Assembly: GCA_976226885.1 (NCBI GenBank)
Contig: OZ320313.1
Location: 53,382,001-53,446,000, forward strand
DNA: 64,000 nt
DNA from: Iphione sp. A-MEVVRFRX5
Lineage: Eukaryota
Direction of reading: 5' to 3'
Shown here in pieces: positions 5,090-61,809 of this stretch; position 1 is the first letter of the stretch, and every line of letters starts with the position of its first letter. The notes below the pieces were generated by a model that was not told the DNA's origin, searched no databases, and saw only the letters and a program-made list of their open reading frames with translations. A program made the translations under genes and the position numbers.

Positions 5090-61809
<56,720 letters not shown>

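Follow-up and report, generated by a model that had tools for sequence, protein, structure and literature searches.

Twin 5' splice donors at the leucine-zipper boundary of an annelid-type YAP gene, conserved between two worms and apparently independent of the vertebrate YAP1 switch

The leucine-zipper exon of a YAP/Yorkie gene in the 64-kb stretch of DNA analysed here (hereafter the window, meaning the whole stretch) ends in two consensus 5' splice donors placed exactly 12 nt apart, and the same arrangement is retained in a second worm (worm 2) across near-random synonymous divergence. Comparison of the two genes indicates that the downstream donor is held by purifying selection, and we regard the pair as probably a genuine case of alternative 5' splice sites, the choice between which would move the zipper register by four residues. 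It appears to be a new and apparently independent case of a known type of splice switch.

The gene lies on the + strand, spans almost all of the window and is the only one of its kind there; the YAP copy number in its 1.18-Gb assembly is also one. Its features are as follows.

5090..5550, + strand: exon 1, with the start codon, the TEAD-binding region and the first half of WW1.
36172..36461, + strand: WW exon, with the end of WW1 and WW2; donor GTAAGT.
36873..37228, + strand: zipper (leucine-zipper/coiled-coil) exon in its short, alpha-like form; acceptor cag|CGAAAC at 36873, phase 0 end.
37229..37234, + strand: donor 1, CAG|GTATGG, at the exon boundary common to other bilaterian YAP genes.
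37229..37240, + strand: optional, beta-like 12-nt exon extension GTATGGAACAAG, GTA TGG AAC AAG, encoding Val-Trp-Asn-Lys in an open frame.
37241..37247, + strand: donor 2, AAG|GTATGAG, 7/7 identical in worm 2.
37924..37959, + strand: candidate cassette exon of 36 nt (12 residues); acceptor AG|TTCAAT, donor CAA|GTATGG.
51924..52095, + strand: next constitutive exon, phase 0 start; acceptor acag|GAGAAC; encodes ENMLKESM...GIDPFLG...NSADSGLG.
52461..52544, + strand: coding exon; donor GGGG|GTGAGTT.
61807-61809, + strand: stop codon of the last exon; protein end ...LLTWL.

The gene had originally been predicted to be a YAP/Yorkie orthologue, an assignment that its TEAD-binding region, WW domains, zipper and C-terminal motifs bear out. 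Exon 1 carries the N-terminal TEAD-binding region of a YAP protein: it matches Pfam PF15238 (TEAD-interacting loop) with E 3.3e-5 at 24.4 bits, slightly below the family cutoff of 26, and this region is 42-53% identical to annotated YAP1 of Lineus, Lingula and Argonauta. WW2 is recognised by Pfam WW (PF00397) with E 2.3e-12, and WW1 begins in exon 1 and is completed in the WW exon. The zipper is followed, as in YAP, by DPFL...SADSGLG...PRTPEDFL and a C-terminal PDZ-binding ...LTWL. The exons were compared one by one, with the heptad register counted from the junction inside each exon; the closest full-length proteins among those retrieved are annotated as YAP1 and belong to a nemertean, a brachiopod and a cephalopod, with ~45-55% identity per exon.

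The final codons of the zipper exon (GAA ATC GCC CAA CAG) run into GTATGGAACAAG and then into GTATGAG. Positions 37220-37249 read gcccaacag gtatggaacaag gtatgagaa, the last codon, CAG, closing at 37228, and the GT dinucleotides at 37229-37230 and 37241-37242 are each preceded by AG and followed by ATG. The original prediction of tandem donors 12 nt apart, both fitting the consensus and enclosing VWNK, holds in every part: the donors lie at 37229 and 37241, each matches 7/9 positions of MAG|GTRAGT, and the 12 nt at 37229-37240 are read in the exon's frame without a stop. The downstream acceptors suggested with them are also real (AG|GAGAAC at 51924 and AG|TTCAAT at 37924). The junction thus has two features of a beta-type variant: the zipper exon closes with a pair of consensus donors, and the 12 nt between them are divisible by three and free of stops. 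The calculated U1 duplex energies are -7.7 kcal/mol for donor 1 and -5.7 kcal/mol for donor 2, and those of two further donors of the gene are -6.8 and -9.5 kcal/mol. A word search of proteins with the zipper exon returned no match in its length band and no transcript-derived protein over the junction.

The window contains a single copy of the motif AGGTATG-N5-AGGTATG, 100 shuffles of it yielded no copy, and Tandem Repeats Finder describes 37227-37250 as a period-12 repeat of 1.9 copies. It is tempting to speculate that the donor pair was born by tandem duplication of AGGTATG; the period-12 repeat is supported in the window and unsupported in worm 2.

Worm 2 was reached through the WW exon. 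A search with this exon returned mostly multi-WW proteins together with two short ORF-type proteins (exon read-throughs of genomic contigs), and these two exon-ORF matches led to worm 2, a 709-kb ENA contig represented by two overlapping pieces (L002 and L009), and to a 520-nt contig. A further search gave worm 3 (contig L004), which extends to the zipper exon end; contigs L003 and L005-L007 end before the zipper exon and were left out of the junction comparison. No relatives of the WW exon, such as host contamination would leave, turned up among contigs from bacterial and archaeal genomes, and a scan of JGI metagenomes for CAGGTATGGNNNAARGTATGAG gave 19 matches, all of them chance matches with no coiled-coil coding upstream. 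The YAP layout of worm 2 matches that of the window from the WW exon through the zipper exon, the 36-nt block and the next exon to a later exon. The parts around the junction are these.

L009:4222-4475: worm 2 zipper exon, orthologue of 36873..37228.
L009:4476-4494: worm 2 donor pair, CAACAG|GTATGGAGCAAG|GTATGAG.
L009:5042-5077: worm 2 36-nt block, FSWPANRPTFGQ, with AG and GT retained; donor at L009:5078-5083.
L009:13354, start: worm 2 next exon, EILLQEAVM, orthologue of the 51924 exon.

It had been proposed that the junction be aligned in related genomes to see whether both GTs and their spacing are kept. This is so in worm 2, where the two GTs still stand 12 nt apart and the frame stays open; its extension, GTATGGAGCAAG, encodes VWSK and is identical to that of the window at 11/12 bases, the sole change being Asn to Ser. 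It is not so in worm 3, where the only donor is the first and +12 lacks a GT. The pair is thus kept in one of these two worms and missing from the other, and the species with the donor pair are two, that of the window and worm 2. The 36-nt candidate cassette is conserved in worm 2 in its length and in both of its splice sites.

The weight of this similarity depends on how far the two genes have diverged. At four-fold degenerate sites 56/78 positions (72%) differ between the window and worm 2, which is near random, and the NG86 estimates over 244 aligned codons are dS 2.9 and dN 0.29. As an internal control, the identity of intron positions +7..+19 was determined at all five donors of the gene pair.

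WW exon donor: 3/13 identical.
Zipper exon donor: 12/13 identical.
Mini-exon donor: 3/13 identical.
Donor of the exon ending at 52095: 4/13 identical.
Donor of the exon ending at 52544: 4/13 identical.

Past +19 the identity in the zipper-exon intron falls to background (9/26), and within the long intron, which is 14.7 kb in the window and 8.9 kb in worm 2, the mini-exon block is the only alignable part. An identity of 12/13 at positions where the control donors show 3-4/13, with synonymous sites saturated, argues that donor 2 is under purifying selection.

These figures effectively refute the reading that the second GT has no function and stands at its place, 12 nt inside the intron, by accident. 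GT sites of matching quality occur in the window at 0.00225 per base, which puts the chance of one at exactly +12 at ~0.2% and at any in-frame offset of <=30 nt at ~2%; a donor-like GT at a short in-frame offset is therefore expected at about one donor in fifty, and this junction was examined because of the human precedent. Chance of this kind would nonetheless have to produce 12/13 matches, at saturated divergence, where the four control donors have 3-4/13, and at a background identity of ~30% the probability of doing so is of order 1e-5.

Selection on donor 2 might act on something other than its use as a splice site. Downstream U1 sites can serve as enhancers or decoys, and AAG|GTATGAG could be an unspliced intronic element, binding U1 or otherwise regulating splicing, that aids or tunes recognition of the weak donor 1, in which case only the alpha-like protein would be made. 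The donor-like consensus bases fully account for the conservation, as would be expected of such an element: the two donor consensus stretches cover 19/22 conserved bases, and there is therefore almost no independent sign of codon constraint on the 12 nt. Three of the 12 extension bases fall outside the consensus, and one of the three differs. We nevertheless consider an unspliced element unlikely, given the exact 12-nt spacing with an open frame in both worms and the complete -3..+7 donor context of donor 2, including its AAG. Nor is there a conserved RNA structure: when the region of the donors was folded, nothing stable or shared emerged (z -0.43 and +0.52). The multiple-of-three spacing together with the open frame adds only about three-fold likelihood to the reading of donor 2 as an alternative donor.

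A different possibility is that donor 2 is constitutive, in which case the protein would always contain VW(N/S)K and the upstream GT would be no more than the start of a Val codon. The 7/7 conservation past the exon and the retention of a Val-Trp-x-Lys peptide are both compatible with this; we judge it improbable from what is seen at donor 1. Its boundary is that of every other YAP gene examined, the zipper exon ending at the first site in all other species examined, and its U1 match is the stronger of the two. Its synonymous positions (in CAA CAG GTA, the A of CAA, the G of CAG and the A of GTA) are kept in both worms, the last two despite the 72% difference at four-fold sites. A strong idle donor 12 nt upstream of the one in use should moreover be selected against, and the heptad without the insert is preserved across the junction in both worms. 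Donor 1 is thus unlikely to be silent, because of the shared boundary, the better U1 match and the kept synonymous positions. The use of both donors is the most economical account, because harm would be expected from an unused upstream donor and conservation would not be expected of a silent downstream GT.

We therefore return to the reading in which the two GTs compete as 5' splice sites within an annelid-type YAP gene. An alpha-like form would arise when 37228 is spliced to 51924, which joins the zipper exon directly to the next exon; splicing from 37240 would add Val-Trp-Asn-Lys and give a beta-like form with the reading frame kept. Combined with the 36-nt cassette exon, the donor pair would generate four in-frame zipper variants, following the logic of vertebrate YAP1's alpha, beta, gamma and delta forms with an independent origin. 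From the sequence we infer that both donors are used in mRNA, with an effect on dimerisation or transcriptional activity. Both are sub-optimal GTATG sites, which would let splicing factors determine the ratio. All three donors of the variable region, the zipper-exon pair and that of the mini-exon (37960-37965), read GTATG(G/A) in the window and in worm 2, whereas the constitutive donors of the gene read GT(A/G)AG and the single donor of worm 3 at the zipper boundary reads GTAAGG. The weakening U at +4 of the variable-region donors is itself conserved in both worms, and such conserved weak sites fit regulated splicing.

A second candidate alternative donor was noted in the same gene, at 52545-52600 (worm 2 L009:14269-14315). 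The donor of the 52461-52544 exon, GGGG|GTGAGTT, is 11/11 conserved with worm 2, and the read-through past 52544 is conserved as protein (worm 2 ...ASVAAWCHQYAG) up to GCAG|GTACGT (GTATGT in worm 2). The length of this extension, 54 nt in the window as against 45 nt in worm 2, is divisible by three in each, and the extension contains a 9-nt indel and synonymous changes.

The consequence for the zipper can be read from the register of its hydrophobic residues. Across the junction of the window these are Leu -18, Leu -11 and Ile -4 in the zipper exon and Leu +4 in the exon that follows (51924..52095), of which it is the fourth residue and where it prolongs the zipper heptad. The residues are seven apart across the junction, and the leucine heptad therefore runs through it; the same Leu/Leu/Ile/Leu pattern is common to worm 2, worm 3 and other phyla, Limulus being one example. 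The beta-like insert would displace the final leucine of the zipper by four residues, producing a 'stutter' with a predicted spacing of 11 residues and the inserted Val at a core position. As the insert, unlike human VRPQ, has no proline, the helix may be shifted and not broken.

The geometry at the worm junction had been predicted to be that of human YAP1, and a second GT at +12 with an open frame does agree with the published human exon 5 extension, which is 12 bp long and encodes VRPQ (PMC7150473, PMC5867882, PMC13169595). The human extension site is an alternative donor (PMC5867882), and the added residues break into the zipper and reduce transcriptional activity (PMC7150473, PMC13169595). 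Only the alpha forms of human YAP1 have an intact zipper, and YAP1-2alpha heterodimerises with TAZ (bioRxiv 10.1101/2025.01.28.635202). The worm pair resembles vertebrate exon 5.2/5B (beta, VRPQ) in having a donor 12 nt downstream and in encoding four residues, the first a GT-encoded Val, placed so as to interrupt the leucine zipper of the activation domain, and its candidate cassette resembles vertebrate exon 6 (gamma) in being a short cassette exon in the same intron, with all combinations in frame (PMC7150473, PMC5867882, PMC13169595, bioRxiv 10.1101/2025.01.28.635202). The two systems differ in that the worm peptides, VWNK and VWSK, lack the proline that VRPQ has, in that the worm cassette encodes 12 residues and the vertebrate one 16, and in that the worm donors are twin GTATG motifs, candidate alternative sites of apparently independent origin.

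The junction pattern ...[RKQ]Q|E-x-(M/L)-L is conserved across Bilateria: the boundary after ...Q is found in genomic sequence from worm 2, worm 3, Lingula, Haliotis, Mytilus and Branchiostoma, and ...Q|E-x-(M/L)-L is seen in amphioxus, echinoderm, chelicerate, mollusc and brachiopod YAP, the vertebrate side being taken from published descriptions of the zipper interruption. The human YAP1 junction reads ...ELLRQ|. The donors at this boundary in the other taxa are as follows.

Worm 3: GTAAGG; no in-frame GT downstream within 30 nt.
Lingula: GTGAGT; in-frame stop at the fourth codon.
Haliotis: GTCAGT; no in-frame GT downstream.
Mytilus: GTACAA; no in-frame GT downstream.
Branchiostoma: GTGAGC; in-frame GTs only poor, at +6, +18 and +24.

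These single donors bear on whether the worm pair shares its descent with vertebrate YAP1 exon 5.1/5.2, both going back to an ancestral bilaterian alternative donor. The identical exon boundary and 12-nt offset (PMC7150473) would suit common descent, as would the repeated occurrence of in-frame variation at this junction in many phyla. We find such descent very unlikely: worm 3, Lingula, Haliotis, Mytilus and Branchiostoma each have a single donor with no GT at +12, so that many losses would be needed; a four-residue insert beginning with Val was seen at the junction in none of more than 100 invertebrate YAP proteins inspected; and VWNK and VRPQ have only the GT-encoded Val in common. The original prediction had left the choice between deep conservation and convergence open. 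Since the other taxa have single donors and the peptides share only Val, convergence is favoured and deep conservation is not supported, and the donor pair most plausibly belongs to a single worm clade that arrived by itself at the arrangement known from vertebrates. The window and worm 2, as against worms 3 and 4, have in common an insertion of one residue in the WW exon (DPR-G/L-KS), which weakly suggests that the two group together; overall identity in the short WW exon does not resolve the tree of the worms.

Among other known systems, the worm pair is akin to short-distance tandem splice sites (in-frame donor pairs and NAGNAG acceptors), where the choice of site gives subtle in-frame variants. 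Most such pairs are not known to be conserved over saturated divergence, and in this the worm pair differs from them.

Several other lineages have annotated isoforms at the zipper junction. The horseshoe crabs Limulus and Tachypleus have a 10-residue cassette (P0150/P0180-P0184) and the sea star Acanthaster has cassettes of 17 and 15 residues (P0111/P0185/P0186). Like the worm extension, these are in frame, lie between ...LRQ/...LQQ and EM(M/Q)LR and interrupt the zipper; unlike it, they are whole exons and not the product of a donor shift, and their sequences are unrelated to VWNK. Amphioxus (Branchiostoma; P0085/P0187-P0198) includes or omits Glu through a TAG|GAG acceptor, and Lingula (P0060/P0199) includes or omits Val-Gln, also on the acceptor side; both use the same intron as the worm pair, which is donor-side. 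Taken with the vertebrate beta and gamma segments and the worm features, these cases suggest that splicing variation which keeps the frame has recurrently targeted the zipper junction in Bilateria, making it a hotspot.

The VQ/VQVQ isoforms of Lingula were considered as a donor-side parallel and rejected, the genome placing the variation on the acceptor side (...GTACAG|GTGCAA|GAG) with a single GTGAGT donor upstream. In Lingula anatina (L008:25040-25060) the X1 isoform (VQVQ) needs an acceptor after ...TTATTG, which is non-AG in this assembly version, and only the X2 acceptor (ACAG|GTGCAA) is canonical; the mismatch is due either to an artefact of the gene model or to assembly versions that differ. 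Separately, a 15-kb Logan contig contains an uninterrupted YAP-like ORF of 342 residues (L032:3001-4029), running from the WW domains to a ...TWL-type C-terminus and adjoining a Snf7-like gene, which belongs either to an intron-poor organism or to a retrocopy. P0092 is an intronless ORF and is uninformative for the junction.

Taking the donor pair and the cassette together, we tentatively put forward, at something short of even odds, that annelid-type worms independently evolved the whole vertebrate-style two-by-two YAP zipper switch and that both of its parts have been kept by purifying selection over a time sufficient to saturate synonymous sites. An independently evolved and selectively kept copy of this geometry in a distant phylum would be comparative evidence that the on/off switching of the zipper is functional. 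If the proposal is true, an invertebrate system would be at hand for testing the function of the beta and gamma inserts, and tuning the zipper, beyond merely possessing one, would be a recurrent adaptive need of Hippo signalling.
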